A stretch of 64,000 nucleotides of DNA from Macrostomum hystrix (lineage: Eukaryota; Animalia; Platyhelminthes): contig CATNEN010000031.1 in assembly GCA_950097015.1 (NCBI GenBank), forward strand, positions 744,001 through 808,000, written 5' to 3'. Position numbers and translations under genes: made by a program. Below, in pieces: positions 2,291 to 62,161 of the stretch (position 1 is the first letter of the stretch; each line of letters starts with the position of its first letter). The notes below the pieces were generated by a model. That model ran no database searches. It was not told the DNA's origin and saw only the letters and a list, made by a program, of their open reading frames with translations.

Positions 2291-2322
2291 CCAATCGCAG
2301 CGCGTCTCGCCAGGCTATATAA
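2291..2322 (+). promoter_or_regulatory. Putative Pol II promoter of the HLH gene (CCAAT at 2291, TATATAA at 2316)
   Basis: Motifs lie ~85-115 bp upstream of ATG 2406 at the end of a GC-rich stretch (~1620-2500). Confidence 0.5.
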
Positions 2323-2405
2323 TCGAAGCTTCGGGTGGACCTCGAGACTGACAGCTCTGCGAAGTTCCCCACATTTAGCAAGTCCATAGATAGAAACTGA
2401 ACCCC

Positions 2406-4589: not shown

Positions 4590-5025
4590 TAGAGGAAACT
4601 GGAAGCTTTCAAATCCCTCAGAATGAAAATTTCCCATGAAAACTTTCCCAGCAGATAGAGCAGTCCATTTCCTGTTTATCAATCTGAAATGCACGGTGTC
4701 CCGCTTGCTAGCGTCTGTCTTAGAAATTGATGTTAGATAAGGCATCATTCTTATGCTTCTCTGTATATAGCTGGCCTCTTCTGCATCTCTCTGATGTAAA
4801 CACAATGTGCCATGTTGCAACTGGTCGAATGCCAATGTACACTGTACAGTGTTGCTTTCCTGTACATTCCTGCCGTTTGATTAATTAAACACAAAACTCT
4901 GCAGAAAGATCGCGTAATAAGACAAAGCCGATTCGTTTACTTTATCGTGTGCTTCTACTTGGAAAAAATGCGGCTGCATTTATTAGAATGCGGGCTTCGC
5001 AGCGCTTTGATGCCGATGTAAATAT

Positions 5026-6101: not shown

Positions 6102-6567
6102 ACTCGAGAAACCTATTTTTCAAGTTTTTTAAAAACTAATGAAATTTATCGAAAGCGTTAGTGCTACAAAATGCTTTCTTTAAGTTCTAATGCGAGCCTT
6201 TATTGTGAGATCAAATTGGTTAATATTATATGTTCATTTTATAAAAAACACTACAATATGGATTCACAAGCGCACAGGAGTACAAAGTGTTGCTAAGCCT
6301 GTCATTTAACATTGTGCATTGTGAGATCATTGCAGAAAAGTTATAATAGACTAATAAGGAATATCTAACATTGCATGTTTAATAAAAATACATAAATACT
6401 TTATTGCAGAAATACTACGGTTAATAACAGGTTTTCTGTTTTGCTTGTTTTAGTGATTTGTACTTTGTTACTAATTTGAGTTTTGAAATTGAGTTTATTT
6501 GAATAGTTTTAAGTCAACACAACCTGTGCGTGGGGTCGCTTCCTGACAAACCCAAACGTCTTTCTGA

Positions 6568-14034: not shown

Positions 14035-14296
14035 GCTGCCGAGGCTGAAGGTGCGAGCCGCTGTTCAGGAATGTAATCGCTTAACTGCGGTTTTCAGTGA
14101 GATGAGCTCGAAGAAACGTGTGCCATTTAAGAATATGGCAATTGTATTTAACCCTGAGTCTCCAGCATTCGCCATTGGTGGAATGGATTAGCGTCAATTT
14201 TTCTTGCAGTTTCGTAGTTTCGTAGTTTGCGTAGTTTTCGTACCGGCTTACTTCCGGTTTGTAAGCCGACCAAGCGTGCATAAGTGGCGATCATTT

Positions 14297-14346
14297 GCTA
14301 CTGCTACTACTACTAATACTACGACGACTACTACTACTACTTCTTT

Positions 14347-14411
<65 letters not shown>

Positions 14412-14412
14412 T

Positions 14413-14461
<49 letters not shown>

Positions 14462-14600
14462 GCTACTGCTACTGGTTCTACTACTACTAGTATTCAAGTA
14501 TTCTACTACTACTACTACTCTACTACTCAACTACTACTACTGCTACTACTGCTACTACTGCTACTACTACTATAACAACTAGTTCTACTAATAGTACTAC
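14297..14600. repeat. (CTA)n microsatellite ~260 bp upstream of the gene A start codon
   Basis: Long imperfect CTA tract. Confidence 0.97.
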
Positions 14601-15499
14601 TACGAAAGTAAGTAAGAATGACTGTTTTATTTGAATCTGTTTAGGCAAGGCATAATGTTATGTATTTCGAATTGCCTACGGCAAATTATCAGCATGCAAG
14701 AATCTCAAGACTAAAAAAGCACTTCAACTTTCATACATTAATAGATTAGCATCACTTAACTTTTTCGCACTGTGAATCAAACATTCCGCTTCAAATTCGA
14801 AGACACAATGCGCCCTTTTAGAACAGCATTGACGTTGATACGCGAAATGGCAACGATACTTTTAAACATAATAATTTACGCACTTGACTGCTAGTGTATG
14901 CAGCAAAAAATCTAGCCTGTTAAAATACTCCAGGTCTACTCAAACAGTAATATTCGCTGCTTTACGGGGTAATCTTTTACGGACTCATGCTCATAGCTCA
15001 AAGAAGCAATAAAAATCTGACCGTAGTTTTTTTAAAGTGCACTTTTCTAGGATAATTGTAGGAACCGTAAGAACAAAGCACCAGTACGAACATCAACGGA
15101 CACTGATAGCTGTGCAGGAGTATTCAAAGTGTTAGTGTTAACAAAAATGTCATGCAACACAAGAGTACTCTAGATAGTGAAAACACCTAGATGCTCAGAT
15201 ATGCCGGTGTTAATCGAGAATATAGATCAAGAGTATCTTGCTCATTAATTACTTTTTAAGTTACACAATAATCACAGCTAAAATTAGTAGTGAGAAGTAG
15301 TATAAACTATGTTTTGCTCCCTCATGTCTTCGATTTTGCATTCATGCTACAGGTACTTTGACTTTTTAACTGGCTGCATCAGGTATAGTGTTGGGATGAC
15401 TTTATATTCCGGGCTAATGTCAAGTAACTCATCGCAGGCTTGCAGATGTCAACGAGGACAATCGAAAGTCCTCTTCGTCAGTTCCTTGTTAATTCTCTG

Positions 15500-15850
15500 T
15501 GCCTTTACTTCATTCCTCTTCTTCTTTTTCTTCTCCTGATGCTTATGCTCCTCCTTTCTTTTTCCTCCTTCCTCTTTTCTTCCTCTCCTTCTTCTCCTCT
15601 ACTTCTCCTTCCTCTCCTCCTTCCTCTCCTCCTTCCTCTCCTCCTTCCTCTCCTCCTTCCTCTCCTCCTTCCTCTCCTCCTTCCTCTCCTCCTTCCTCTC
15701 CTCCTTCCTCTCCTCCTTCCTCTCCTCCTTCCTCTCCTCCTTCCTCTCCTCTAATCCTCCTTCCTCTCCTCTAATCCTCCTTCCTCTCCTCTAATCCTCC
15801 TTCCTCTCCTCTAATCCTCCTTCCTCTCCTCTAATCCTCCTTCCTCCTCC
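15500..15850. repeat. Polypyrimidine tract / 12-bp CCTTCCTCTCCT repeat
   Basis: Near-pure C/T strand. Confidence 0.95.
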
Positions 15851-17250
15851 TTTGGATTTGGACTGAAGCTTCTGGGCTCGGGCGGCAACTGAAATATTTC
15901 CCAGTTCAGAATGTGCAACGTCAATGCACTAATTAAGGAACGACAAAGACAATGTTCGAGCGTAAGACTTACACTGGGCTCTGAAAATGAGCTCATATTC
16001 CGGAGTCGAGCACTTGTGAACGTCTTTTCAATTGAAGCATACGTTTCCATCTTAAATGCCGATTTATAAACTTCAATGCACTCTTGCGCTAAAAGGCTAG
16101 ATCCAAAAATATCTGTATATCTTATTATCTATCTGAAAGATAACACAAGGTAAAAAAGAATAATTAGAACCGGCTCACGGGCAAGTAGGAACCGTCTTCA
16201 GCTAGATAAGTGTCAACAGTACTGCTTTCATTTAGTCCTGTCTAAAATTTGCGAATTATAATCAAAGCCTTTGAATCCTAGATGTTAATTTTTGCATATT
16301 AATTCGCAGTTCAAATGCCAATAAAATCTTACCATTAAAATCCTCCCAGTTCTGTCGGGAACTATCTAAAAATAATATTTTGTCATGAATGTTTTGGTAG
16401 GCAAAACTACCAACTGCTTGAATTGCAGCCCATCACAAGAAGTACCATGTACCATGATTCACATGTATTATGTTATATTTTCCATAATGTATATGTTGTT
16501 CTGCATACCATGATTTACATGTACCATGTTCTATTTACCATGATATAAATGTACTAGGCTCTATGTACATAATGTAAATGTACATGTTCTACATATCATG
16601 ATGTACATGTACATGCAAATCGTGATGATTGCTACTTATCAGTAGACAAGCAGGTTAGGAAACAAGTGAACTCAAGCAAAGTGGCTTGAGATTGGCACCA
16701 ACACGCACTGAGCTACAGGACATAACTATTGCACGTCAGGGATGCAAAATTTTTCACCCATTATCATGTCCACAGTCCAGTTAAAACACTTCCATCAAAC
16801 TGATTTGAATCGCTCGCCTAGGGGCTTGCCAGTCCCTAAGAGCTTACATAGGCCTCGTTGTCAGCTGTTACAGAACTCCGATCAGCAGTGCTAGGCCTTT
16901 CTCGTAAGGCACAGTCTGAAATGCAGGCATATGAAACAGAGCCACATAAAATGGTCCAGGGCGACTACTAGATGCACAATGTTGGCATACCGTTGTGTTT
17001 TTCTCAAATATTCCAGCTGTCAAAGTCTCCTCATCGTACTCAGTCTGAAGTGCCAAAAAGCTTGCGATAATGGTTCTGATCAACCGAAACTGAAATCTAG
17101 AAGCACAGCTTTGAGTGACTTACGTTTGGATCCCTATTAGCAGTCCCATGCGCCTGCGGCAGGGTGTTTTCCTCCTCGTATACCGTCTGAAATGTTACAA
17201 TGCTTTTTAGCATATACAACTCAAGCATTGAGTCTGGCATCGTTGTAGGG

Positions 17251-17764
17251 CAGGGGTAGGCAAACTTATTTGCTGGCGGGCCAAAGAGAGAGCCCAAAAG
17301 ACGACAGCGGGCCGCATTGACTGTATAAATATGAGATAGGGGAGAGATTAGACACGGGAGAGATTAGACACGGGAGAGATTAGACACAGGAGAGATTAGA
17401 CACGGGAGAGATTAGACACGGGAGAAATTAGACACGGGAGAGATTAGACACGGGAGAGATTAGACACAGGAGAGATTAGACACGGGAGAGATTAGACACG
17501 GGAGAGATTAGACACGGGAGAGATTAGACACGGGAGAAATTAGACACGGGAGAGATTAGACACGGGAGAGATTAGACACGAGTGAGATTAGACACGGGAG
17601 AAATTAGACACGGGAGAGATTAGACACGGGAGAGATTAGATACAGGAGAGATGAGACGCGAGAGAGATGAAACAGGACACTGTAGATGTCAGAAGGGGCA
17701 ACGGGCCGATTTGGGAGCTTCGAGGGCCGCATCTGGCCCGCGGGCCGGAGTTTGCCGACCCCTG
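17251..17764. mobile_element. hAT (Charlie-like) MITE carrying an internal 16-bp minisatellite (TTAGACACGGGAGAGA, ~17340-17670)
   Basis: TIRs CAGGGGTAGGCAAACT / AGTTTGCCGACCCCTG; 8-bp TSD TTGTAGGG at 17243-17250 and 17765-17772; GGGCCGC subterminal motifs. Confidence 0.92.
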
Positions 17765-18610
17765 TTGTAGGGGGTGGTAGAGGATTTACAAAAGTTATAA
17801 TTTGAACCCCTGAGAAAAAAATTACATTAGGATCTCTCGCTGCGGGCTGCACTAGATTCTCCTCCTCGTAGTAGATAGTCTGAAAAGTGAAGAGCTACGT
17901 GTTTGGCAGCCATAAAGGCAGTCTATGTTTGTTCATGTAATTCAGTACTAACGTTGGGATCTCTCTCGGGATAAAGCTGAACTCCCGCCGACTGATCCTT
18001 AGCTTCCTGCTCAGTAGCAGCTGAAGAACCAGTCCGCTTCAGCAGCCCGATTGCGACGACGACTATGACAACACTGGTGACGGTCACAGCAATGATGGCA
18101 ATAATCAGCCTATCAGTACTAATACCAACAGGGACAGGGGAGTGGGTGTTTTGAATATCCCGAATGCCTCCGTTTGATCCTTTCAGAATGTAATCTGGAT
18201 GATGAACTAGCTTTGAAAAATGCTTCTTGATATATTCCTCAAAGCAAGAAATATTCACCGACTGTTCATGCTTAGGCAGTTGAACAGGGAACGAGTGCAG
18301 GCCTTTAGAAAGCGCGCTGCGTCTCAGCAGTGCCTGCAAATGAAACTAGCCAAATACCATTTCAGAATAAGAAAATGTCTTGCAAAAAGCTTAATGTTGT
18401 ATTAGCGAGTGGAATTTTCGGCAAATACTAACGTTCTGCTGAGCTCCAGATCCCACGAGCACTGAGCAGCTCAAATTCGGTGCGGGATTACCATTTGTCA
18501 CATTGATGCTCACGTTCATTGTTCCATCAGTTTGGAAATGTCCCGAAATGCTCACAGTCGATTCGACTAAAATGAAAGCAGGTCTAATTAGGCGACATTT
18601 AGCAGCGAAT

Positions 18611-27967: not shown

Positions 27968-35401
<7,434 letters not shown>

Positions 35402-37327: not shown

Positions 37328-38226
37328 CCCACTCGGAGTCAGCAGAGGTGTAGTAGACGGTGGTAGCCATGTAAAATAGGATTTCGGAAATCGGGTCCTG
37401 TGCTACTCAATGCTATATTCATGATTAGAGATAGACAAACTAATAATAACAAAATCCAATAAATATACGGCCTTGCTTTTCTCATACTCTGAGCGTAAAT
37501 TTTGTGTATATTAAGTAGTTAGCACTTTTATTTAAATGCTTGAATAAATAAACAAATAAAACAACATCACAATTTTGATAAACATTTTAGCGTAAAAATA
37601 CGTTTTAGAAAATAGCTTCGCATATTATAAAATATAAGAAATTTTATTGGAATTGAAAAGTTCATCGCTTTATTAAAAGCTGCAATATCAACACTAAACA
37701 ATGTCAGTCAGTTATCACTAAGGATTCTAAAGCTTGAAATAGAATACCTTGCTGTGTAGCTCTTGACAGGAATAAACAACGAAATAATTCATCCGGATTC
37801 ATTCCAACCGAAAAGCAGGGATATGCATTAATTATTCGTGAGCATCGACAGTGGTTCAACCTGTGCTTCCCCAGGGTGCAGCTCTAAATATGGAGAAACT
37901 AAAATAGCGATAGAAACACTGGAAATTAAATCCTTATATTCAGAATATTTCACAATTTAAACACGGGATTATAAACAAAAAATTGTCTAATCATAGCGAG
38001 TCATCTAGAATAAGTTCTAGAATAAGCCATCTATGACGAACTCAACAGGAATGATAACAGTTTCCTGAACAATTCTTTGAAGTCAAGTCTTCAGCGTGAG
38101 AGCTATTAGAGCTACATTCGGTGTACTTCAGTATGCTCAGCAACTTCCAGTTGAAATAACAGAAAGTCCATGTCCGTATTTCATCCATAAACATAACTCG
38201 AATTTCTAATTTTAAAGCACTCGCCA

Positions 38227-41200
38227 CTACATCTGGCCCTCTTGATGGACACCTCCAATCGAATCAAACGGCTGGCGTATGACTCGTCCGTTGCAGTCGC
38301 AGCTGACAAATGTCCTACCGTCGGTGTCAATGTGACCCACAATGTCTGTGTACAAGGTGAGGCTGCTCTCGGAGAGCTCTGCTGGCGGAAACTGACTGGA
38401 TGCCCCCGGTTCTGGTTTCACCACTTGCACGTAAACATCACCGGAGTCTGCGTAAGAGGTACCAGGCATGATTAGTGGCAGGGCAGGTGCGACAGACTTA
38501 GCCGCATTGTCATGTGTCGCTAGTGTGCCTGTTTTGCTAGGTATTGCCAGCTTTGTAGATTTGCCACTTGCGCCACATTTTGTTGGCTTAGCAGATTTGC
38601 TGAGAGAAGCACGTTTAGCATTAGAGGCTCGATCAGATCTGGGGCGCGAGGCGGATTTGGCCGTTGACAGCGGTCGGACTCGTCTCCCAACAGCCAGTTC
38701 AGAGACTCTGCGGCCAGTGGCGCCCGTCGGCTTGCGGCGGCTGCGTGCGATGCAGAGAGCCACAATGAGACCCAGGGTGAGCAGCGAGGCCGTTGTTGTC
38801 GAGATGCCAATTCCCACTGATATGAAGAACAGATGGCTGGGCTCAGTTGAAGAGCCTCCGGGAATCAAAGTGGTGGCCATTCGAATTGCAGTAGCTGAAA
38901 GTTTAAATCGATCAATGAGAATTATAAATTTAATTTCAGCTTTTTGTATGGCAGAAAAACAGCAGATTTAAATCAAATATATATATAATAAATCTGTGTC
39001 AAATCATTCTAAATGTCAGAAAAAATAGGATAGGGGAAACGTAAATTACTGTATGATATAAAGGCTAAGGCAAAAATTCAACATTTTTATTTTGGCTTGC
39101 CTATAACTCCCATACAAATACGGCAGTTTTATCAGTCAATTGACTTACTTATTATACTAATGAATACAACACTATGTGCTCACAATCAGCTGTAAGGCTT
39201 TCTACGAGCGTGAATTAAAAACAAGGCCTAAATTTTTCTCTCCGTGGCAATGGCTGGCTGGCTTAGAATATCTATGGTCTATTTCACATGGGGAACCACT
39301 CCGATAATGTTTTTGCTAAAATTTCGTCTTTTAAGCTTGCAAGTTAAAGGCATTGTGCAAACAGAGAGAAGACTACAGAACGGGATGCTCAATTGCAAGG
39401 ATACCAGTCTAATACACCCATTGTCCTACAGACAAATAATCGTTTCATTGGTCTGAGGCAGAGCTGGCGCATGCGTCAACTTGCAACCGTCAAGACGGAA
39501 GTTAGAATTTAAAAATATATTTTACAAGTTAGAAAACTTAGAAAAGCTGTTCAACCGACAATCGCATGAACTGAATAATTGTTGGATAAGCTAGCTAGCA
39601 CTGCATTAACTCAATTTAATAATCATTGACGACTCAATAGCTACCCAAAGTAAAAAGCGATCGCAATGAGCTTAGCTTAGCATTTCGCATGTACAATGTA
39701 CTTACTTAACTCACTGCAGTTAAATGAATGCTCTGTTCGATTGAGCACATTCTTGCCAGCTGCAGTTTGATTCACCTGGCAGACTATCAGGACATGGCTT
39801 GTAGCTTGGCATTGCTGCTGTGAAATCTCGAGAATCGTACCATTTTCAACTGGTAAAAGTTTCGGCACTGACACACTGGATTCGCTCTGCAAAGTTGGGG
39901 TCGCGTTCTCAGTTTCGGAAGACTTGTGAGGGTGGACACGTCAGGCCCGACAGCAGCGCACGGATGCTTGAGAATTTGAGAATAAAAGACGTGAACGAAA
40001 GTCAGGAAGGGAGCAGAAGACGGAAATTAGGAAGCTAGAATACGCTTGTATTGACATAACAAAGCTGATACGAGCGAATCTGACAAGGACAATAATGAGA
40101 TAGGATGATTGGCAAAGTGAACGATTGTACTGAAATATTTCAATGAATATAAGCAAAACTTGTAGCATAAAAGGACAACGAATTCCAAACCTATATGAAG
40201 AAATGCACTCACTGAATTCATCGAACACATTGTACTTGGCTTTGGATTCGCTTCCGAAACTGAAACTTCCACTGACACGTGCCTTTGGTTCAGTCGATGA
40301 AGCTTGACGCTAACCCGAGGCTGATCTACCCGAGGTAAATCAATAACAGAAACTGGTAATTGGATGATGATGACAAATAGATAAGAACTATTCTGTATCT
40401 CTCACAAAATACGCTGACGTTTTGAACAAGCTGATCAGCTCTCCTTGAGCACGGGTGATTAGCGATGCACACCAGTTTGGAGCCGTGCATCGATCGACGC
40501 GCTGCGATGCGGAACGCGGACTGGCCGTTCGATTCAGCAATATTCTCTAGTGAGATGTTCTCCTGCAAAGCAGTTCGTTCAAGAATTTTGTGCTTATGCC
40601 ATTCCTATATGCCAATAAAGCTATTGAAAACCTACAGATGGGAGTTTAGTCATGAGTAGCAGCCAGCATTGGTGCTTCACTTGAGGGCTGTCACTGACTG
40701 AGCTGACATTGACAGAAATGCCGTCGCCCTCCCAAACACTGACAGTCTGCGTTGCAGTCCATCTGCTTTCTGGCTGCTCTAAAACGGAATAATTATAACA
40801 TCAAGAACACGAAACGTAAACGAATCCGCCTCAGTGCGCAGTGTCATCAGGCGAGACGCTGGGTTGTCTACTACGAGTATTTTTCCTCAGCCTAATGTAG
40901 AGTGCAGAATTGCGGTAATATTTATTTTAACCAATCATGCGCTAGCTACTCTACTCAACCGCTTAGTAGTAGTTTTTAAAATGCGAACCAGAAAACATAC
41001 AAGTACAGCATGTGATTCATTTTAACAAAAAGGAGAAACGAATCAATCAAAAGTCATGTGACTACTATTAATAGTATCAAATCATTACGTTGTTTAGCGC
41101 TGTTTTGCGCTACTAAACAGAAAAATTCCGCAACCCAACCACAATGACTCCTGCAAGGCTCTGAAAGCAACCGACTTGCGCTCAATGGAGCTCATTCACT

Positions 41201-44200
41201 GTGCATGCGGACCTTTTCCTAAGTGCAATAGCTCGACACACTAGCGAATACTTTTTCACCTGCCCCCAAGGCATACGATCAAAGTTATTAGGACACGGCC
41301 CATGCCGCACGTCGCAACGAATGCATACAGCACACTATAAAGCTGTTTTGGAAGGGGGTCGGTGCCAGAGCGGTAAACGCGTTTGCCTCTCGCACCACGG
41401 TCCCTGAGCTCGATTCCACGGCGAGGCCACATTTATTTGGGACGCAGCCGCGCAAAGAAGGCTTGGGGCTTGTCGTGCAATTTACGCCCTTGAGGGCCAA
41501 CCTCCAAGGCACAGTGAAGTGTACACTGCCTGACGATGAGAAAGTCAGGGCAGATGTACGCACCTGTGTGAGTGTATGCCTTCGTACGATATTTGTGTGC
41601 GCGTGTGCTCAGGAGTCAGCGAATTGCCTCCTCGCGGGCTGCGGGTCTAGTGTCACAGAATGATTTGCCACTGCCTGCAGCACTCCTGCAATTATTTTTA
41701 TTATAAGCTTTTTCGACTTACGAGTCAAACCAAAATACACTCACAACACACAATTCAGGCTAAACTTATTTATGCTTATACGAAGGGTGTACTGAAAGTT
41801 TTGAGATGCACCAAAACCAAAAAAGTCTGAGGCAAATTTTCTGTCACTAGTTTTCTATGTAGTTGCCACCAGCTTGTACACATTTCCTCATTCGGTGAAA
41901 CCACTGCGTCCAGGCTCCAGCCCACTGTTCTTCAGGCACTGCTGAAACCACCCGCTCGAACTCGATTCTTGCTGCTTCAGGGCTCTCAAACCGAGTGCCA
42001 TGCAGTTGGTTCTTCACCAAAGGGAAGAGAAAGAAGTCGCAGGGTGCCATATCGCGCGAATATGCAGGATGCGTCACCAGCTGGACTCCATTCTCGGCCA
42101 GAAATGCCAATGTTGCAGCAGCCGTGTGCGCACTGGCATTGTCGTGGTGCAGCAGCAGGCCACAAAGTTGCGCGACCGGCGTCTGCGCCACGCTTCGAAC
42201 ACCAGCCAGCGGCAGGCACTGGTTGATATACCAGTCGGCATTGACTTACGCCTGTCTTGGAGCGCTACAGTCGCCAGGTGCCCAGCCTGGCTGAAGAAAG
42301 TCCCCACCATCTGCTTCCCGACGCTGCGGGCCCGCTTGACCTTCGTTGGAGTGGCATCATCCGGAAGGAGCCAAACTGCCGACTGCTGCTTGGTTTCCGG
42401 GTCGTACTGGTAGACCCAGGTCTCGTCGCCGGTGACAATCTCCCAGCATCGCTTCGAGATGCCAGAGCCGAATCTTTCGAGCATGAATTCGCACTAACGC
42501 ACCCTCTCCGCTTTCTGGTCCTCCGTCAGGTTGTGGGGCACCCATTGGGCACATCGTTTGGAGGCTCACAGCTTGTCGTGTAGGATGGTCGTAACCGCTG
42601 CCGATCCAATGCCAAGAGCCTCTTTGAACTCGCCACAGGTCATTCGCCGGTCTTCGTCGATCATTCTCCGGACGGCAGCGATGTTTTCATCCGTGACAGC
42701 GGAAGCTGGACGTCCCGACCGAGGCTCGGTCATCAAGGCTGCTCCGGCCCCACTTGCATTGGCTGTCCCACCGAAAAACGGTGGCACGTGGCTTGGTCTC
42801 CAAAGGCAGCACGTAAACTTTCAACGCATTGCTCTTGTGTGAGACCTTTACGCTGGTCGTAAACTATCATGGCACGAAAGTCGCGGTTTGTCAACTCCAT
42901 TGGAGCGAGTACAGTTTGGTAGGGGGTATTGACCTTGAAGAGTGATTGTGAAAAATTGCCAAGAGTGCAAAGGCTAAAATTTATACTTAATCATTTTTAA
43001 GGAGGTATAGTATGTACATTAAAAGGCGTGCAGCTGAGACATTTGAGTCAGACGTATCTCAAAACTTTCAAAACGATCCTCGCACGATGTGTAATATGTA
43101 TGCATGTATAAATTCACACCGAAACTCAAGCTTCTCTGAAAGGTATGCATCTCAGAGCAATGAACGAGAAATACTCACTTCGCACGTTAATTCTGCTGCT
43201 GTTGAACACTGCCGCATTGGCACCCGAGAAATTTTGCTTCATTCTGCAGCTAATCACCTTCCCACTGTCCTCCAATGACATGTTGAAACTGAAGGAAAAG
43301 CCACCCTGGACCACTTTCTGCTAAAATGTAACAGTGGTATTTTAAGACTTCTCCTTAAGCAATCGCATGTTACTTATTGGTTAGCTGATGTTGAGGCTAC
43401 AGTGATTTAAGCATTTTGTACTTGGCCTCACATTGCGTGACTCTGAAAATGTGCCAGCGAAAGTGCAGCTGACAAATGAGGCTTCAGGATTTCCAAGGTC
43501 GGTCACATTGAGGCGGAAATGTGCAGTGAAGCCGTGACACAAGACTGGGGACAGCCGCTGTACTGTTGCAGCTGGCCGGTCTACAAAGGAGTAACCGTAT
43601 TTAGCTTGTGTATGACACTTGCAATCTGTTTCTGACTGCTTATTTTAAAAGAGAGAATGCCAGTATGAACTTTTCAGTAAACTCACAGTACACAGGTGGA
43701 GCATTTATAGACTCGTTCCTTTCACAGCCGAGTCCCGGCTGGCTCACAGAGCACCGGATGCGGGTTGAAGAGCCCCATCGTCTGGATGCGTGACCGGTGA
43801 AAGACTCGCTTGCGACTGACTTCTGCAGAAATAAAGCCATGAAATCAGCGACCATTACTCATGAAGGTGGCTCAAAATGTCCCACTAAAGAAGGCATGTG
43901 CCTTCAAATTTCCCATTATTGCTTAGAAAGCTGCTTGTGATAGAAATATTGGACATTCTACAATCTTTCATGAACTACTTACAGAGAGGCTTCTCATTGT
44001 TTCTTCTCCATGCTGGGTGAGCACAGAGCAATGATAGCTGGTGTGAAACGGCCAGTTGCTGCTTGTTGAGTTCGCTGTGACACTGACGACTGATCCTTCC
44101 AGCCAGTAGCTGCCGGGTGACAGTTAGATGCGAGCCTCACAGGGGTCTGAAGTGCACGCAGGGTGTAAGCAAAGATAATGATTCGCTTATCACAATGGCT

Positions 44201-46641
44201 TCAAATATTTCTATCTAAGTTTTGAAACGTATCAGCTTACAAACTAACGGAGGAATTTTCAGTGGTAACTTTTTAGTTTCAGTTGAATGAGAATTTTGTT
44301 CACAAAAAATCCAGCGGTTCTCCAGGGATGAGCTCACATCCAACCTGAACTCGTAGACCCCGCTTAGACAGAAGTGGCACGAGCTGGTGCTTTTGGTTTC
44401 CACTTTCTGAAAATTTCGGCAACGAGTATATTTGGTCCGATTCATTGCTAAATAGGACTGCCATGTACTAGCTGTGTTACATTCACTCACCACGAGCTTC
44501 CTTTGTATTTCGTATGTTGAGTAGTTCTTACATTTGTTAATCTCCTCCAAGCCGTTGCAAACTCTACAGGCAATCAATGTCACAGGAAATCCGGCATCAC
44601 TGGTGACGCTGAAGTTGACGGATCTTCCTTCTACCCAGAACTGGCGCCCACCGCTTTGAAGACCGGAGTCGTTGAAGTTGGATTTGCAAGTCTTTGGCTT
44701 TCTCTGAGTGCATTGAGGGCATTCTTAATTATAGCTCATTTTATGGCATGCACAAACAACATGAAAATCAACGAACAAGTGGCCCCGCTCTGTATACAAA
44801 TGGAATCAAAAATATAATATTTTGTTTTAGTAATCCTAGGAATGCAATCGGCTACCATTGTGCAACCGTCAGTCTAATTGACCCGAACCTAGCGGGGCCG
44901 CCGCATGCTGAAGGCAGCTAATCTGAGAGCTCTCTGATTCGGAGAGCTAATCTGAGGTGAGCAACGATTTGATCCGCTGAGTTCATTCAATCTCTCTTGT
45001 TTTCATCGTGAGCAAAGTAAACAAATCAGTAAAAAGCATATCGAGAACTCAGTACCATCGAGTTGCAGCCTTGTCGAGGCCCTGCGGGTTGAGTTGTCGC
45101 AGCTGAATTCACACAGGAGAACCCAATCGAACAGACTGTTCACTGGTTTGAATTCCAGCAAAAAGTCCCATGCCTCAGGCTTCAAAACTTTCTGGAATAA
45201 GAGAAAATCACCACTCAGTGCTTGCTGACAGGCAAAACTGATCAACCAAGGTGAATGGTCAGCTCAGGACTTACCAATGTCCCATTCCACTGCTCGCCAG
45301 CCTGAGATCTGATGCTGCAGCTGGGCTGTCTGCCGGAATCCATTCGGCACAGCAGAGACACGTTCACATGGACTGAATCATCGCTTTTCAAATGTTTCAG
45401 CCCAGGTTTGCATCGCTCAATCTTGTTCGAGACGGAGGCACAAGTAGAAAAATAAGCATGGTTTGCTTCTGCAAAGGAGTGATAGATGCCCAGTGTTTTA
45501 GAGAGTAGAACAAGTCCATATTACAAGTAAAAAAACATTCGATTCAGAATATTACGAGCGAATAAAAATGTTAAGGCTCGAGCAAAGATCAATGAGAAAC
45601 GAAAGCTCACCTTCTGTGATATCCAAGCCGTTGAAGGATGAGAATGAACTGCCTCGACGCTGCCGAATGAGAATGTGCTCAGTCGGCTGCAATGTGAGTT
45701 GTGATGCATGTGCTTAGAAAAGTCATCTGATCAATCTGGACTCTCAGTCGAATCAGTGGAGAGTGCAGTTACCAGTGGAATGGCGGTCCTGTTGCACTGC
45801 ACGAAGAACTCCGCAGTCGAGCCGGCTGAGACGCCTCCCCAGCCGCAGGAGGACAGAGCGGTCGAGTCGTGTCTGAGCACGGCAAGGCAGTTCGAGTCAG
45901 CCGCGAACGCTTCGGGTGGCAACCAGCTGCCGAGGAGAACCTGCAAGCCACTGCCTCCAGCTGAAATTGCAAAGCGGCTGCCTTGACAACAACGAACTGA
46001 CTCTGAGCTCAGCTGGGACTCACCTGCGTGCACAGTGACTGACAGCACTCGGACTTCTCTGACCAGCTTCAGCAGCAGCCAGTGGTAGCCGTCAGAGTCA
46101 GCGACTCTCCCGAGGCTCCAGGACCGCTCGCTGAGCTGGGACTCGCTGACGCAGCTCGGAGAACTGGCATCGCCGGACTGCCAAGCGGCAGCCACGTCCG
46201 CGCTGGAGACGCGGAACGTCTGGCTGTCAGCCGTGGAGGCTTCAGCCACGCCAGCCAGTAGGCCTGAGGGTGGTCGAATGGCTGTATGAGCTGACGCAAT
46301 TGTAGCCAATTGCAAATCGCATCAGTTGCCAAGGCAACACGAGCAGGGTCGAATTAAAGCATGCAGTTACGGTATATTAATGTTTCTTGGAGTAAGTAAG
46401 CGAAAATGGCTTGGGTCTGAAATCTCCTCTCCAAAGAATACACAGCTGTTTAATAAATCCTTGAACGAGTTGCTGGTTTGTAAGTCGGTTAGGTTGTCCT
46501 TCCTTTCTTGTTTGAGCTCTTGTGATCGAGGATAAAATTAAGTATCGCAGCATTCTTACCACACAAGTAGCAGCAGCAGCAGCAGCAGAGCCAGGACCAC
46601 AAGAAGCTCTGCAAGGAAAACAGTTGACACATGCTCGGCAT
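38227..46641 (-). CDS. Receptor gene D: signal peptide, lectin-like domain, ~6 Ig-like domains, TM, long tail with ITIM-like + ITSM motifs; one in-frame TAA (possible pseudogene)
   Basis: Exons 46641-46560, 46290-46024 (GYHWLLLKLVREVRVLSVTV), 45960-45773, ~45684-45609; Ig half-exons from 45.4 to 39.7 kb; terminal exon 38894-38227 with TM LFFISVGIGISTTTASLLTLGLIVALCIA and DVYVQVVK...TLYTDIVGHID; TAA at 44126-44124; exon phases at 44.9-44.5 kb unresolved. Confidence 0.75.
41781..43082 (-). mobile_element. Decayed mariner (D,D34D) transposon in an intron of gene D
   Basis: 1302 bp; imperfect TIRs CGA(A)GG...TGAAAGTTTTGAGAT; ATG at 42900 (MELTNRDFRAM); WVPHNL, TGDETW, HHDNASAH, HPAYSRDMAPCD motifs; frameshifts and a stop. 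Confidence 0.95.
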
Positions 46642-47979: not shown

Positions 47980-49880
47980 CAGGGTCGCTGCTTGGCTCAG
48001 TAGGGAATATAGTAAAATACAATCTACCTTGAATTACACTTAGCAGGAGCAGCAGCAGGTTCTACTCGTATAGCTACAGCTGTGAAAGGAGGTATTGACG
48101 CAGCAATAGCAGCTGAAGAGTTAAAAAACTCAAAGATTATAATCAAACTCTAGAGTTGCTCAAAGTTATAAAATACTTTAAAACAGAGCCGAAAGAAGAC
48201 ACAAAACTAACTACTACTACTGTTAGTAAGGAGGCAATGAAAAATTTCGAAGATCAACTTCTAGAACTAAAAGGTGAAAAGGAGTTAAAGACATTTTAAA
48301 ACTAATAAAATGAGTTCGGAAAAGCTTACACAAAAGGATAAAATACTAATCGATTTTCTAGAAGGTCTTATTGGATATTTTGATACGAATAATAAGGGTG
48401 ATTTATCTATTCTAAAACATCTAGATAGATTCGCAAAAGTTGACTAAAACACATATTTATAAAAACTTGGTTTCTCATATGCCCAACAAGGACATCCAAT
48501 AACATTAAGACATAATAATAAAAGCTAACGTTTAACAGATTCAGACATAATTTTTAATTGTCATTTCATGTTAAAAAGGATGGTGGTCTTCTTCCACTAG
48601 TACCAATCCTCCTCGGTCTCACGGCAGCAGGTGCAACAGCTTTAGCAGCAAAACGAACTAATGATAATCACAAGCAACTAGAAGAACTCAAAACTAAACT
48701 TCCGCTTCTAACGCTTTTACCACTTAAATTTGGTGGATTAGCAGCAGCTGGTGGTTTTGCAGGTGGAGCAGCAGGAATCGCAAAAGCTGTTAATGACAAA
48801 AAAGCTGCAGATGAAGCCGCAATCAGAGATGCTGAGTTCAACAAATGAATAATGACGCATAATTTAAACAAAAACTTATTGATACTCTAAATATTACTTC
48901 TGCTTCTGAATCAGATAAAGCAGCACCTCTAAAAAGTTGAATGGATCTGGTCTTATCTTACAAGGATCGAATCAAGGTCAAGGCCTTATCTTACAAGGCT
49001 CTGTCACAGGTCAAGGCCTTATCTTACAAGGCTCTGTCACAGGTCAAGGCCTTATCTTACAAGGCTCTGTCACAGGTCAAGGCCTTATCTTACAAGGCTC
49101 TGTCACAGGTCAAGGTCTTATCTTACAAGGATCGAATCAAGGTCAAGGCCTTATCTTACAAGGCTCTGTCACAGGTCAAGGCCTTATCTTACAAGGCTCT
49201 GTCACAGGTCAAGGCCTTATCTTACAAGGCTCTGTCACAGGTCAAGGCCTTATCTTACAAGGCTCTGTCACAGGTCAAGGCCTTATCTTACAAGGCTCTG
49301 TCACAGGTCAAGGCCTTATCTTACAAGGATCGAATCAAGGTCAAGGCCTTATCTTACAAGGCTCTGTCACAGGTCAAGGCCTTATCTTACAAGGCTCTGT
49401 CACAGGTCAAGGCCTTATCTTACAAGGCTCTGTCACAGGTCAAGGCCTTATCTTACAAGGCTCTGTCACAGGTCAAGGCCTTATCTTACAAGGCTCTGTC
49501 ACAGGTCAAGGCCTTATCTTACAAGGATCGAAACAAGATCAAGGCTTTATCTTATATAAGGCTCTGTCACAGGTCAAGGTCTTATTCTAGAGTCTACAAA
49601 TGTTGGATCCGGAGTAGCTGCCGATAAACTACAAGAATCGAAAGGAAAGATGGAAGTGGGTTCAATATAGAAATGCGTGCTAAAGTAGGTTCTGGAATCT
49701 TTCTTAAAGGAAGTAACACTGGGCAGGGTCTAATTCTCGAAAAATCAAGCTGCCAATGTTACAAATTTTATCATATTAATTATTTCCTATAAAATGAATC
49801 AAAGAAAAGTCCGCGATGCTAGAAAACGAGTTGAGCAAAGAAGACGCGATGAGCAAAGAAGGACCTATTAGAGAAGAACT
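47980..49880 (+). mobile_element. Degenerate Maverick/Polinton (adintovirus-like) fragment encoding Gly/Ala-rich virion-type ORF remnants
   Basis: GGLLPLVPILLGL, GGLAAAGGFAGGAAGIAKAVND and repeated GxGL/IxL motifs (GSGIFLKGSNTGQGLIL), which I recall from Polinton structural ORFs; AT-rich, intronless, broken frames; no polB, integrase or capsid seen. Confidence 0.6.
48940..49575. repeat. 33-bp minisatellite (GTCAAGGCCTTATCTTACAAGGCTCTGTCACAG), ~19 copies, reading GQGLILQGSVT
   Basis: Direct repeats, with a GSNQ variant recurring about every 5-6 units. Confidence 0.96.
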
Positions 49881-53470: not shown

Positions 53471-56400
53471 AAGCAAGCGTTTATTTGTGAGAAATACTGT
53501 TGGCTTAGTTAAGTGGGGTAAAGGACTGTATTGAGCGAGGACAGTGAAGTAAACACTGCAAGACGATGAGAAAGTCAGGGCAGATGTACACACTTATCCG
53601 TGAGCGTATCCCTGCGTACAGTATCCGTGTGCGTGTGTGCTCAGGAATTAGCGAAATGGGTAGAATTGCCTCACCTCGCTGGCTGCGGGTCTAGCGTCAC
53701 CAAATGATATGACATTGCCCGCAGCCCTTCTGCAAATATTTTTAATTATGATTTTGATTCCGATATTCCAATTTGGATATTATTAATTATTTAGTAATTG
53801 TTGTTTAACCTCGGCAATAAAACCTCGACAAGCAAACTTAGACTAATAATCCTCGGCTATCAAACAGTTTCACAGCAAAAATTGCGTGAATTCCGGCTCT
53901 GCGTGAGCGTTGCCTGAAGCCTGAAGACATGCCTGATTACAGTTGGTGCCACGAAAGGCGCAACTTTATAGTTTTGCTTTTAATTGCACTGGAAAATTGC
54001 ATTGAAAATTGCACTTCAGGCTGGTATATTTATTTATGCTTTCATCAAACGCAACAAATCGATTTCTTGAATAAATGGCTACGCATGTTATAGCTCGTTT
54101 TTCTCATTACTTCATTCGAAATCAACTACAATAGTGCAGTGCTGGCACTCAGTCTCCAGTCTCACTTGATGCACGCGAAACAGCTGGGAGACAATTCACA
54201 AAAAACATAATAAATACTCGTAGTTTGATGCATGCAGTACAGCTCAGAAAGATTATATCAGAAAGTCTGTTGTTTTTATTAAAGTTGCCACAAGCATCAG
54301 AATATTTCGCATATGGAACGAGAAATCTAGAATATGGAAGCAAAACTATTGGGAGTTCATGGCTGGCATGCACACAATTTATTGGGGATAACTAACTCCT
54401 GATAATACGAGCTCGAAGAACAAGTGATTGAAGCCTTTTGGTAATTGTAAGGAACAGGAATACGATTGAAATTTTATTAAGCAAAGCATAATATGATTAA
54501 AAAATCACACACAGTTTTCAGCTCACTCTACAAACAGTTTTTTAGCTTTATCAGCACAGCAAAAAATGGCTACTAGTTGAACCAAGTCTCATAACCTCGG
54601 TCGCTAGGTATAAGTTATCACCCACTTTTTTAATTTATTTTGGCCGGGAACGGCTGAGGACTCGTTTATTGGCCGAGGCGAAGCCGAGGCCATGAAACGA
54701 TGTCCGAAGACGTTTTCGGCCATAGATAAGTCAAACAAGTGGGTGATAATGTATTTATTCCACAGTTGAAGCCAGATAATTGTCACCGGACCAGATAAAT
54801 GTTTATCTGTCCCGGCCAGATAAATTTCAACGGCCAAATAAATACATTTATCTGGTCTATGGGCCAATCCAACTGGGGAATAATTAAAATTCAGAGTCTA
54901 ATAAGTGCTAAGTGCGGCACTCAATGTAATTGACAGACACGTTTTTATTTAAATTTCTTTTTTCGAATTTCGGCAGTAAAAACTTTTCCATCCTTCCGTC
55001 CTCCAATGACAGTTCTGCAGATCTCATGAAAAAGCAAGACACTGCGAGCTTGACGAAAGTCAGTTCACGTAAGTCCCAGTCGGTCCTCCGTCAGCATATT
55101 CGTACATGGTCTGAAATGCGGAAAAGACCAGACATTGTGGAAGCAGATGTAGGTCGCATGCGGAAATATGTACCGACAAAATGAGCTTCCGTACTCACGT
55201 TCGGGTCTCTGAAAGCTGTGGCAGGTGCCAGTGGTGGCTGTGAAGAGTTCTCCTCGTAGTAGATGGTCTGGAATCGCAGTTCAATGTGGTATGTCGTGTC
55301 ACAACTTGTTAAAGTTAAGGATCAAGGTAGCATATTACAAACTGCTTTGGCATCGCTAAATGCTAAGACAGGAACTACGCAGTATGCATAATCTGGTTTC
55401 GTAAAAAACTGAAACAGTTCAAGACATGTGCTTGCATTGGGATCTCTCTCAGCTCCGCTAAGAGGCATGCCAGGTCTCACTGAGTTCAGCTCGCTTGGCA
55501 TGCTCTAAAATGTCAGTGGAATTGAACCATGAGAAGGGTGATAAAAATGCCACAGAAATTCTATGAAGACAGAGCTTAGACCTACAATTGGATTTCTGTC
55601 AGCTGGCGATGAAACAAGCGGGATTGCTGCCGGATGACTTTGGGATTCCTGAGTCGCAGCAGCACAGGAGCAGCTCCGCCTCCAGACAGAAATCGAGACA
55701 ACGACGCCAAGCACGATTGAGAACAGCACGGCAGCCACCAGCAGGAGTCGATGCTCTGGCACTGAAGCGTCAGATTTGACAATCACAGAGTAGATTCCGA
55801 GCATTCCGATCCTCTGATGGCGCTGCTCCACGGAACACGAAACATTGACTGACTGCTCAGGCCTTCGCAAGTCGAATACTGTGTGGCGACGACCAGTTGA
55901 TGTGGGGTCACAGTTGCAGATGCTCACATTCTTAAAAAGTGCGATTCGTTGTCCTTTAAATTTGATTGAGTATCAGGCATCTCAATGAAATGATTTGGCT
56001 CACATGCCGGGTCCCAGAGCTCGTGAGCAGCGAGCATTTCATTCCTGATATCCAGCCCCCTTCTTTCACACGGATGCTGATGACAAGCAGTGTTCCCGAG
56101 ATCCTTGAGTCGGACAGATCCAACAAGTCCACTGCGGAATGAGCTAAAATGAGAGTTGCTTTGACATTTGGTTTGATAGGACTTTTGATCTCATTGTTCG
56201 GAGTATAGATTATGGCTGCTAGACAAAAGACAAACAAGCGCTTGTGTTCGCCGAGAGGAAACAAAGCTTGGCGGCTTGTCGCACAATTTACGATGAGAGC
56301 CAGCTCCCTAAACATAATTGGATTGTATACTGTCTTTTAATGAGAAAGTATGGCAGATGAGTTCACAATGAGAAGTGAGCACATCGGCATTTGTGTGTTC

Positions 56401-57849: not shown

Positions 57850-60800
57850 GCTTAGCACTACTCATACACGAAGTACTTACGTAACTGACTGCAGTCAATC
57901 GAATGCTCGGTACGGCTGAGCACATTCTTGCCAGCTGCAGTTTGATTCACCTGGCAGACTATCAGGACATGGCTTGTAGCTTGGCATTGCTGCTGTGAAA
58001 TCTCGAGAATCGTACCATTTTCAACTGGTAAAAGTTTCGGCACTGACCCAATGGATTCACTCTGCAAAGTTAGGGTCGCTCTCTCGGTTTCCGAAGACTC
58101 GTGAGAGGATGGAAACGTCAGGCACGTAAGCAGCACATGAGAAAGCAGAATGCTTGAGAATTTGAGAAGAAAAGACGTGAACGAAAGTCGGGAAGGGAGC
58201 AGAAGGCGGAAATTAGGAAGTTCTTCATAAGCGATAGAATACGCTTGTATTGACATAACAAAGCAGAGACGAGCGAATCTGACAAGGACAATAATGAGAT
58301 AGGATGATTGGCAAAGTGAACGATTGTACTGAAATATTTCAATAAATATAAGCATAACTTGTAGCATAAAAGGACAACGAATTCCAAACCTATATGAAGA
58401 AATGCACTCACTGAATTCATCGAACACATTGTACTTGGCTTTGGATTCGCTTCCGAAACTGAAACTTCCACTGACACGTGCCTTTGGTTGAGTCGATGAA
58501 GCTTGACGCTAACCCGAGGCTGATCTACCCGAGGTAAATCAATAACAGAAACTGGTAATTGGATGATGATGACAAATAGATAAGAACTATTCTGTATCTC
58601 TCACAAAATACGCTGACGTTTTGAACAAGCTGATCAGCTCTCCTTGAGCACGGGTGATTAGCGATGCACACCAGTTTGGAGCCGTGCATCGATCGACGCG
58701 CTGCGATGCGGAACGCGGACTGGCCGTTCGATTCAGCAATATTCTCTAGTGAGATGTTCTCCTGCAAAGCAGTTCGTTCAAGAATTTTGTGCTTATGCGA
58801 TTCCTAAATGCCAATAAAGCTATTGAAAACCTACAGATGGGTGTTTAGTCTTGAGTAGCAGCCAGCATTGGTACTTCACTTGAGGGCTGTCACTGACTGG
58901 GCTGACATTGACAGAAATGCCGTCGCCCTCCCAAACACTGACAGTCTGCGTTGCAGTCCATCTGCTTTCTGGCTGCTCTAAAACGAAATAAGTTTATCAT
59001 CAAGAACACGAAACGTAAACGAATCCGCCTCAGTGCGCAGTGTCATCAGGCGAGACACTGGGTTGTCTACTACGAGTATTTTTCCTCAGCCTAATGTAGA
59101 GTGCAGAATTACGGTAATATTTATTTTAACCAATCATGCGCTAGCTACTCTACTCATCCGCTCAATAGTATTTTTTTTAAATGCGAACCAAAAAACATAC
59201 AAGTACAGCATGTGATTCATTTTAACAAAAAGGAGAAACGAATCAATCAAAAGTCATGTGACTACTATTAATAGTATCAAATCATTACGTTGTTTAGCGC
59301 TGTTTTGCACTACTAAACAGAAAAATTCCGCAACCCAACCACAATGACTCCTGCAAGGCTCTGAAAGCAACCGACTTGCGCTCAATGGAGCTCATTCACT
59401 GTGCATGCGGACCTTTTCCTAAGTGCAATAGCTCGACACACTAGCGAATACTTTTTCACCTGCCCCCAAGGCATACGATCAAAGTTATTAGGACACGGCC
59501 CATGCCGCACGTCGCAACGAATGCATACAGCACACTATAAAGCTGTTTTGGAAGGGGGTCGGTGCCAGAGCGGTAAACGCGTTTGCCTCTCGCACCACGG
59601 GCCCTGAGCTCGATTCCACGGCGAGGCCACATTTATTTGGGACGCAGCCGCGCAAAGAAGGCTTGGGGCTTGTCGTGCAATTTACGCCCTTGAGGGCCAA
59701 CCTCCAAGGCACAGTGAAGTGTACACTGCCTGACAATGAGAAAGTCAGGGCAGATGTACGCACCTGTGTGAGTGTATGCCTTCGTACGATATTTGTGTGG
59801 GCGTGTGCTCAGGAGTCAGCGAATTGCCTCCTCGCGGGCTGCGGGTCTAGTGTCACAGAATGATTTGCCACTGCCTGCAGCCCTCCTGCAACTATTTTTA
59901 TTATAAGCTTTTTTGACTTACGAGTCAAACCAAAATACACTCACAACACACAATTCAGGCTAAACTTATTTATGCTTATACGAAGGGTGTACTGAAAGTT
60001 TTGAGATGCACCAAAACCAAAAAAGTCTGAGGCAAATTTTCTGTCACTAGTTTTCTATGTAGTTGCCACCAGCTTGTACAAATTTCCTCATTCGGTGAAA
60101 CCACTGCGTCCAGGCTCCAGCCCACTGTTCTTCAGGCACTGCTGAAACCACCCGCTCGAACTCGATTCTTGCTGCTTCAAGGCTCTCAAACCGAGTGCCA
60201 TGCAGTTGGTTCTTCACCAAAGGGAAGAGAAAGAAGTCGCAGGGTGCCATATCGCGCGAATATGCAGGATGCGTCACCAGCTGGACTCCATTCTCGGCCA
60301 GAAATGCCAATGTTGCAGCAGCCGTGTGCGCACTGGCATTGTCGTGGTGCAGCAGCAGGCCACAAAGTTGCGCGACCGGCGTCTGCGCCACGCTTCGAAC
60401 AGCAGCCAGCGGCAGGCACTGGTTGATATACCAGTCGGCATTGACTTACGCCTGTCTTGGAGCGCTACAGTCGCCAGGTGGCCAGCCTGGCTGAAGAAAG
60501 TCCCCACCATCTGCTTCCCGACGCTGCGGGCCCGCTTGACCTTCGTTGGAGTGGCATCATCCGGAAGGAGCCAAACTGCCGACTGCTGCTTGGTTTCCGG
60601 GTCGTACTGGTAGACCCAGGTCTCGTCGCCGGTGACAATCTCCCAGCATCGATTCGAGATGCCAGAGCCGAATCTTTCGAGCATGAATTCGCACTAACGC
60701 ACCCTCTCCGCTTTCTGGTCCTCCGTCAGGTTGTGGGGCACCCATTGGGCACATCGTTTGGAGGCTCACAGCTTGTCGTGTAGGATGGTCGTAACCGCTG

Positions 60801-61885
60801 CCGATCCAATGCCAAGAGCCTCTTTGAACTCGCCACAGGTCATTCGCCGGTCTTCGTCGATCATTCTCCGGACGGCAGCGATGTTTTCATCCGTGACAGC
60901 GGAAGCTGGACGTCCCGACCGAGGCTCGGTCATCAAGGCTGCTCCGGCCCCACTTGCATTGGCTGTCCCACCGAAAAACGGTGGCACGTGGCTTGGTCTC
61001 CAAAGGCAGCACGTAAACTTTCAACGCATTGCTCTTGTGTGAGACCTTTACGCTGGTCGTAAACTATCATGGCACGAAAGTCGCGGTTTGTCAACTCCAT
61101 TGGAGCGAGTACAGTTTGGTAGGGGGTATTGACTTTGAAGAGTGATTGTGAAAAATTGCCAAGAGCGCAAAGGCTGAAATTTATACTTAATCATTTTTAA
61201 GGAGGTAGAGTATGTACATTAAAAGGCGTGCAGCTGAGACATTTGAGTCAGCCGTATCTCAAAACTTTCAAAACGATCCTCGCACGATGTGTAATATGTA
61301 TGCATGTATAAATTCACACCGAAACTCAAGCTTCTCTGAAAGGTATGCATCTCAGAGCAATGAACGAGAAATACTCACTTCGCACGTTAATTCTGCTGCT
61401 GTTGAACACTGCCGCATTGGCACCCGAGAAATTTTGCTTCATTCTGCAGCTAATCACCTTCCCACTGTCCTCCAATGACATGTTGAAACTGAAGGAAAAG
61501 CCACCCTGGACCACTTTCTGCTAAAATGTAACAATGGTATTTCAAGACTTCTCCTTAAGCAATCGCATGTTACTTATTGGTTAGCTGATGTTGAGGCTAC
61601 AGTGATTTAAGCATTTTGTACTTGGCCTCACATTGCGTGACTCTGAAAATGTGCCAGCGAAAGTGCAGCTGACAAATGAGGCTTCAGGATTTCCAAGGTC
61701 GGTCACATTGAGGCGGAAATGTGCAGTGAAGCTGTGACACAAGACTGGGGACAGCTGCTGTACTGTTGCAGCTGGCCGGTCTACAAAGGAGTAACCGTAT
61801 TTAGCTTGTGTATGACACTTGCAATCTGTTTCTGACTGCTTATTTTAAAAGAGAGAATGCCAGTATGAACTTTTCAGTAAACTCA
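57850..61885. repeat. Segmental duplication of 39690-43685 (offset ~18.2 kb)
   Basis: Near-identical from 58235 to 61885 including the mariner; visibly more diverged at 57850-58234. Confidence 0.97.
59981..61282 (-). mobile_element. Decayed mariner, duplicate of 41781-43082
   Basis: Same flanks and same lesions, so it inserted before the segmental duplication. Confidence 0.95.
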
Positions 61886-62161
61886 GGGAGGAAAAACCTC
61901 AGTAAAACGGAGACTATTGGCCTAGACCGAGGGCTTTGAGCAGATATAATCTGGAAATATACGTCTGGAAGTGTTAGTTGGACTCTGTCAGAGTCTGAAA
62001 TTTAACAAAAGAAGGCTTGAAATTCATGCAATGGTGTCTATATATTCGTATGCGCACTGACCGCTAACACGAACTGCTCAGAAACATCTTTTCTTACGTT
62101 GAGTGGCTTCTTGTAAGTAATGTGGCAGAGACACGTCATAGTCACATGGAAAGTAGGAAGT

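Follow-up and report, generated by a model that had tools for sequence, protein, structure and literature searches.

Within a 64,000-nucleotide stretch of the genome of the flatworm Macrostomum hystrix (GenBank assembly GCA_950097015.1, contig CATNEN010000031.1, positions 744,001 to 808,000; hereafter the window), our analysis revealed that two putative receptor genes, A and D, carry the same two-tyrosine cassette in their cytoplasmic tails. In it, a first tyrosine set within or close to the consensus of the ITIM (immunoreceptor tyrosine-based inhibitory motif) is followed by a second within an ITSM (immunoreceptor tyrosine-based switch motif). Judged from the sequences, the match is one of homology, with chance excluded for the second motif, and what has been retained is best described as a single homologous cassette of ~38-40 residues with a 6-residue indel, not as two free-standing motifs. 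It is an ITIM-like/ITSM unit of a known kind, found in a new lineage and gene family; comparisons between the two genes and with close relatives support its retention under constraint, and it is probably a working signalling site. Positions below are those of the window, and the motifs and exons of the receptor genes lie on its minus strand.

A six-frame scan of the window (128,002 residues) found T.Y..IVGH.D solely in D (38326-38358) and in A (6592-6624), two matches where 2.2e-5 would be expected, and no IVGH beyond these two copies. The shorter pattern Y..VVK occurs three times on the minus strand, in D (38416-38433), in A (6664-6681) and at 3224-3241; as 0.48 matches are expected by chance, the one at 3224 is taken as background. 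The original prediction had placed a two-tyrosine signature of this form in D between 38320 and 38440, with 27 residues from tyrosine to tyrosine in D and 21 in A. Both D motifs fall inside that interval in the scan, and counting on the translations returned the same two distances.

According to the published consensus definitions (PMC8631942), an ITIM reads [SIVL]-x-Y-x-x-[IVL] and an ITSM reads T-x-Y-x-x-[VI]. The first motif of A, VEYATVVK (6664-6687), is a canonical ITIM by virtue of VEYATV, whereas that of D, DVYVQVVK (38416-38439), is ITIM-like in its Y-x-x-V but deviates at -2, where DVYVQV (DVYLQV in close relatives) has an aspartate instead of S, I, V or L; the non-canonical -2 position claimed for D is therefore upheld. 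The second motif is a canonical ITSM in both genes, with TIYLTI in TIYLTIVGHLD of A (6592-6624) and TLYTDI in TLYTDIVGHID of D (38326-38358), and the VGH-x-D extension behind it is the same in the two; an ITSM would be expected by chance 0.03 times in the 172-aa tail of D. Both genes likewise have VVK at +3 to +5 relative to the first tyrosine. Between them, the two motifs account for every tyrosine of the A tail and for two of the three in the D tail. By inspection, they lie in both genes on the cytoplasmic side of a single predicted transmembrane (TM) helix, as in a type I receptor; no signal peptide was found.

Aligned to A, the D cassette spans 38317-38433, that is, 39 aa from the first tyrosine to three residues beyond the second motif, and contains a 6-aa insertion, PEPGAS, relative to A (extent taken from BLASTP, the cassette alignments and a hidden Markov model (HMM) score of 101 bits). 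BLASTP of the D terminal exon against the A tail exon (E 1e-5) gave an alignment with a single gap of 6 residues and 14/38 identities; 14 of 33 aligned cassette positions are identical. The Smith-Waterman score of the cassette is 62 against 24.8 +/- 4.5 in 5000 shuffles of the A exon, none of which reached 62. The indel is located directly behind VVK, and this one event accounts for the difference between the 27- and 21-residue spacings. No similarity exists between the membrane-proximal tails, of 104 aa in D and 53 aa in A, which score 18 where shuffles gave 23.9 +/- 4.2. The claim that only the motifs are shared was nearly right, but slightly overstated for the stretch between the motifs, where Q, L and S also match ([ED]L[SA][ED]S ahead of the second motif); by itself, this stretch is marginal (17 versus 12.0 +/- 2.5, p 0.054). 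Taken together, the shuffles and the expected counts rule out a chance origin of the match.

The cassette HMM, run over all six frames of the window, scored 86 bits in A and 101 bits in D, with the next best hit at 5.8 bits, and no third copy or decayed remnant was found behind genes B, C or F. The tails of B and F consist instead of QTIYYEEEN and ERDPNVS units, and that of C of polyQ; the cassette is therefore the mark of one tail type and not a family-wide signature. The repeats of these two tails (minus strand, 16871-17894 and 55094-55504) are short units of T-[IV]-Y-(Y)-E-E-(E)-N followed by RDPNV(S), an acidic Y-E-E motif that, unlike the A/D cassette, possibly docks a different class of SH2 domain.

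The same cassette is set in different exon contexts in the two genes. In A, splice signals and phase predict that it stands alone on the last coding exon, STPPVEYATVVKGQLTETDLADSTETIYLTIVGHLDSEDVEPS (6571-6699; 43 codons, phase 0, stop at 6568-6570), which begins at 6699 behind the acceptor cag|AGC. The 3' part of the preceding TM exon (8685-8963) encodes the helix FFASFGSLLALGLVFGVVLVSVNCIFL and a 53-aa tyrosine-free proximal tail, and its donor, ACG|gtagcc after 8685, lies 1985 bases upstream with compatible signals and phase. The separate A exon of the original prediction is thus in keeping with these signals. In D, a single terminal exon (38227-38894; stop 38227-38229) within the open frame 38230-38967 encodes the end of the ectodomain, the TM helix and the 172-aa tail. 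Specifically, by inspection of the translation, a 29-aa hydrophobic segment, LFFISVGIGISTTTASLLTLGLIVALCIA (38745-38831), is followed by the basic stop-transfer sequence RSRRK. A membrane-proximal spacer of ~100 aa comes next (38446-38744), rich in Ser, Ala, Arg, Lys and Pro, with a net charge of +19; at its end stands Tyr 98 of the tail (TSYADS), which has no hydrophobic residue at +3. The spacer gives way to SYADSGDVYVQVVKPEPGASSQFPPAELSESSLTLYTDIVGHIDTDG and then to a 29-residue C-terminal extension, RTFVSCDCNGRVIRQPFDSIGGVHQEGQM (38230-38316), which has no counterpart in A.

That D encodes the motifs in its TM exon was borne out by contigs from close relatives, namely runs X2, X3 and X6, of which X3 and X6 come from organism C (~93-96% identical); none of the listed runs is recorded as RNA. 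In the contigs of X3, X6 and X2, introns are absent at three joints (40561/40635, 40325/40406 and 39886/40215), each bounded by GT and AG on the minus strand, and the contigs therefore derive from spliced RNA. The nearly identical immunoglobulin (Ig) copies of gene F are another possible source of contigs at the D Ig exons. Further, in X3 and X6, one contig per run extends unbroken from 38857 to 37607 and then jumps from 38857 to 39705; hence a single exon, spliced to the last Ig exon, contains the TM segment and tail of D together with the stop and no fewer than 620 bases of 3' untranslated region (3'UTR). Close relatives express D as a spliced transcript.

Within the D terminal exon, splice-like signals flank the cassette. 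An acceptor-like CCTCTTACGCAG|AC (38447-38449, minus strand) stands 14 bases ahead of the first tyrosine codon, and a donor-like ACG|GTAGGA (38317-38320, minus strand), at which the C-terminal extension begins, stands three codons past the second motif; the latter has the same ACG|GTAG as the donor of the A TM exon. The two bracket 129 bases in phase 1-1, and the relatives' contigs read through both. These signals could be the relic of a formerly separate cassette exon, or they could be due to chance.

The sharing is old. At the 14 identical cassette residues, 8 codons are the same and 6 are synonymous, and nucleotide identity across the aligned cassette is 61/111 (55%), so that the cassette has been kept at the protein level since an early date; the same two figures rule out recent gene conversion between A and D. 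Comparison with the close relatives points in a similar direction. Across the cassette and extension (38230-38445, 216 bases), 2 differences are among those listed for the relative's contig, a synonymous one at 38398 and a Val-to-Leu change at Y+1 at 38430, where X2, X3 and X6 all have A, giving DVYLQVVK. The second motif, and indeed all of 38230-38397, has no difference among those listed for the three runs, and every run covering the site retains the aspartate of the first motif at -2. The adjoining 38446-38595 has at least 5 differences (S to N, A to S, S to T and two synonymous), and the spacer as a whole is the site of most differences from the relative. Over 38106-38857, there are 28 differences in total, 3 of them in the 3'UTR and ~23 within the spacer and TM segment, which together measure 412 bases. 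The cassette end (2/216) thus has ~6-fold fewer differences than the rest of the exon (~23/412), with a Fisher p of 0.004 that rests partly on contig summary counts and becomes 0.13 for the fully listed part alone. As the count depends on contigs and summary figures, we take this slower change at the C-terminal end of the exon as only supportive of constraint.

One explanation to be weighed against these data is that the shared residues are a leftover of descent without function in D, whose tail would be drifting while only the A cassette works. The aspartate at -2 would fit such a history, as would the odd build of the D tail, with its 100-aa low-complexity spacer and unrelated C-terminal extension, and no third copy exists in the window with which conservation could be tested. 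We nevertheless consider this very unlikely, given that the other tail parts have diverged past recognition while 14/33 cassette positions are identical, six of them through synonymous codons, that the cassette end of D changes less than the rest of its exon between close relatives, and that D is transcribed and spliced in those relatives. The original prediction had argued from selective retention to function. The retention is supported, in that the cassette is the sole alignable part of the tails, uses synonymous codons and shows fewer differences, while function is a step beyond these observations.

Searches beyond the window were done exon by exon. A word search of a 5.8-billion-protein collection with the D terminal exon gave no match, full-length relatives being outside its length limits. 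HMMER, run over 1.84 billion representatives with the D exon aligned to the A cassette, returned a single match, a 615-aa tandem-Ig protein (P0001), which proved to be a repeat artefact: its repeated VNVTAVKPKPELRSS matched the spacer/cassette junction of D five times, and neither tyrosine motif is present. A metagenome scan with the cassette alignment yielded 64 pattern matches, of which none was confirmed. These blank results say nothing on paralogues in this genome. Language-model look-alikes of the D exon included SCIMP, LIME1 and poxvirus A36R, all tyrosine-phosphorylated TM adaptors, with scores of 0.81-0.87 that are below the reliable range and make them a weak lead only.

As to what the cassette does, we lean, by a little, towards a module whose phosphotyrosines dock an SHP/Corkscrew-type phosphatase or an ITSM-reading adaptor. 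Under this proposal, engagement of the receptor would lead a Src-type kinase to phosphorylate both cassette tyrosines, and the resulting phosphotyrosine pair would dock the two SH2 domains of the phosphatase, or an SH2 adaptor that reads the ITSM. Docking would then damp or switch signalling, as in PD-1, BTLA, PECAM-1 or SIRP-alpha. The phosphorylation, the partner and the inhibitory sign are what we infer from the motifs and from their spacing. In PD-1 and BTLA, the ITIM and ITSM tyrosines are 25 residues apart, a distance similar in many receptors and proposed to let SHP1 and SHP2 bind bivalently through their tandem SH2 domains (PMC8631942); the spacings of A (21) and D (27) bracket this value. 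Further, the residues shared outside the minimal motifs, namely VVK (+3 to +5 from the first tyrosine) and VGH-x-D (+4 to +8 from the second), suggest a partner whose epitope extends past those motifs.

Several observations weigh against this docking proposal. First, the aspartate at -2 places the first D motif outside the ITIM consensus, so that D may dock through its ITSM alone, or the first site may be decaying. Second, conservation is known from two cassette copies only, that is, from one paralogue pair and very close relatives, and the divergence contrast is built on contig summary counts and part of the difference list. Third, none of the protein and metagenome collections searched, all of them without this animal's proteins, yielded a relative. 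Finally, all four cassette tyrosines (YATV, YLTI, YVQV and YTDI) also match the Y-x-x-hydrophobic sorting signal. They could therefore be read, unphosphorylated, by the mu subunits of AP-2 or AP-1 and serve endocytosis or trafficking rather than SH2 signalling. As any residue is tolerated at -2 of such signals, sorting would account for the aspartate of D. It would leave unexplained, since one signal is enough, why two tyrosines stand at an immunoreceptor-like spacing, and also the invariant threonine at -2 of the second tyrosine and the conserved VVK and VGH-x-D; sorting in place of signalling is accordingly an improbable reading in our judgement. The two roles can coexist, as they do in CTLA-4.

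A different SH2 protein might also be the reader. Docking of a SAP-like single-SH2 adaptor, of Csk or of a Src-family kinase would make the cassette a switch or an activating module. The T-I-Y-x-x-I of A is the ITSM form of the SLAM family bound by SAP and EAT-2 (PMC8631942; PMC3958483), and conservation is stronger for the ITSM than for the ITIM, whose -2 position is lost in D. Set against this, A keeps a canonical ITIM upstream at a spacing typical of tandem-SH2 phosphatase docking, and the presence of SAP-like adaptors in this animal would be an assumption; we regard such a reader as unlikely. Returning to docking of a phosphatase or ITSM-reading adaptor, the closest parallels are the vertebrate ITIM-plus-ITSM tails of PD-1, BTLA, PECAM-1, SIRP-alpha, CD33-type Siglecs and G6b-B. 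As in these, a membrane-distal ITIM-type tyrosine is followed by T-x-Y-x-x-[VI] at the end of the tail, and the layout would be that of a single-pass receptor of the Ig superfamily (IgSF) type, the Ig match of D being sub-threshold. The sequence relation is limited to the short motifs, the -2 aspartate of D and the VVK and VGH-x-D of both genes are absent from the vertebrate consensus, the ectodomain of A/D begins with a non-Ig domain, and the partner of A/D is surmised. Similarly, TIYLTI of A and TLYTDI of D resemble the ITSMs of the SLAM receptors (T-I-Y-x-x-V/I; binding SAP/EAT-2 and SHP-2), A having the T-I-Y form (PMC3958483); the SLAM receptors differ in carrying several ITSMs and no ITIM.

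Parallels also exist among invertebrates. The Alr genes of Hydractinia are clustered, fast-diverging receptor genes with unalignable tails that nevertheless hold ITIM/ITAM motifs, and SHP and SHIP homologues are present in the Hydractinia genome (PMC9546547). The fester/uncle fester family of Botryllus likewise comprises clustered, fast-diverging receptors with ITIM-type tail motifs (PMC12582321, PMC11507803), and such tail motifs occur in an amphioxus ITIM/ITSM leucine-rich repeat receptor (PMC8211107). All three belong to other phyla and have unrelated ectodomains. A and D differ from them further in that the two paralogues preserve an entire ITIM-ITSM pair, as a single cassette set in different exon contexts. 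Beyond short motifs, neither these nor the vertebrate receptors are related to A and D in sequence, the HMMER search having returned the repeat artefact alone.

Beyond the tails, the best explanation of the sequences is a single family of single-pass receptors to which A and D belong as diverged paralogues, each with an N-terminal domain common to both, followed by a stalk of Ig type, a TM helix and a tail that is disordered. Outside the cassette, the sole other shared part is the N-terminal exon, with 36% identity over 95 aa. The N-terminal domain was observed in A, twice in C, and in D (13600-14064, 33541-34329, 34928-35245 and 45734-46321, minus strand), with an invariant W-Q-S...C...Y.W.L..L. 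For the D N-terminal exon (45734-46321), Pfam gave no match at E up to 1, Ig included, and a word search of the 5.8-billion-protein collection gave none within the same length limits; the exon aligns with the N-terminal exons of A and C, likewise non-Ig. Its AlphaFold model, built from a 4-row alignment, was unusable (predicted local distance difference test, pLDDT, 32.8). The pattern WQSS...C...GYHWLLL.L..V..L.V bears a resemblance to the F-type lectins, a label that could not be confirmed. Were the domain a lectin, A and D would recall the Siglec/CD22 design of a lectin head, an Ig stalk and an ITIM/ITSM tail, from which they differ in having no V-set Ig domain as head. For this reason D is not a Siglec, and membership was ruled out by the lack of an Ig match in its N-terminal exon (Pfam). 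A literature search for an architecture combining F-type lectin, Ig and ITIM gave general reviews only.

The evidence for the Ig-type stalk is thinner. Among ten D exons, Pfam gave no match above threshold; a weak C2-set_2 Ig match in exon 40329-40604 (E 0.007) scored 16.8 bits against a cut-off of 21. The D Ig half-exons at 40406-40778 (minus strand, with RNA support) read ...SPQVKHQCWLLL... and ...SKLVCIANHP..., with an F-strand-like KLVCIANH and a C-strand HQCW; no cysteine is apparent upstream of HQCW in the first half-exon. Four Ig-type exons of D (40635-40778, 40406-40561, 40215-40325 and 39706/39715-39886) have open frames and AG/GT borders, and the introns between them measure 73, 80 and 328 bases. 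The last ends in tandem donors 9 bases apart, GTGAGT after 39715 and GTAAGT after 39706, both phase 1, of which the relative's contig uses the distal one (GTAAGT). The terminal exon has two candidate 5' ends, again both phase 1, namely 38894 (a strong acceptor, tttcag|CT, at 38896-38895 in this genome) and 38858 (the joint of the relative, whose acceptor position reads CG, not AG, in this genome); the 5' end of the TM exon may thus differ between close relatives. In the intron ahead of the terminal exon, run X2 has a 200-base contig (39451-39650, depth 16.6, one difference), which could be a repeat, unspliced RNA or DNA. More generally, the window contains GT-AG introns as short as 73-80 bases, mariner and long interspersed nuclear element (LINE) copies and satellite arrays. 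Long satellite and microsatellite tandem arrays, open in several frames, stand between and beside the receptor genes (700-6130, 14190-14580, 15430-15770 and 48920-49620).

The Ig block of D (39680-43860) is duplicated at ~98% identity in gene F (57861-62001, minus strand), introns included, together with a mariner copy (41850-42990 in D, 60050-61190 in F). Past the duplicated block, F goes on to a TM exon of the B type (55508-55972) and to a QTIYYEEN / ERDPNVS tail in place of the D cassette. With near-identical ectodomain exons joined to different signalling tails, D and F have the look of paired receptors. A bolder proposal, which we hold doubtful yet worth stating, is that they are true paired receptors, D with its cassette tail and F with another TM segment and a tyrosine micro-exon tail, and that VVK and VGH-x-D mark a lineage-specific bipartite docking cassette with a dedicated reader, in a flatworm receptor cluster with several tail modules that can be exchanged for one another.

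Vertebrate ITIM/ITSM signalling has been the subject of much study, and invertebrate reports concern cnidarian, tunicate, amphioxus and mollusc receptors. A literature search only loosely tied to flatworms found no paper on ITIM/ITSM receptors in them, and work on platyhelminth IgSF molecules has, according to a 2025 review (PMC11999971), mainly identified molecules, with limited insight into function. The A/D cassette leaves the picture of how ITIM/ITSM motifs work unchanged. What it offers is practical: Macrostomum species serve as laboratory models, a bisphosphorylated peptide of the ~40-residue cassette is a concrete reagent for finding SH2 partners, and the residues common to A and D, the two genes compared, point to positions worth mutating. 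A flatworm cluster that keeps the ITIM-ITSM pair as a unit amid divergence is an added spiralian case, and, if the proposal of true pairing holds, the D/F couple would represent an independent spiralian invention of the paired inhibitory/activating design of the KIR, SIRP and Siglec receptors.

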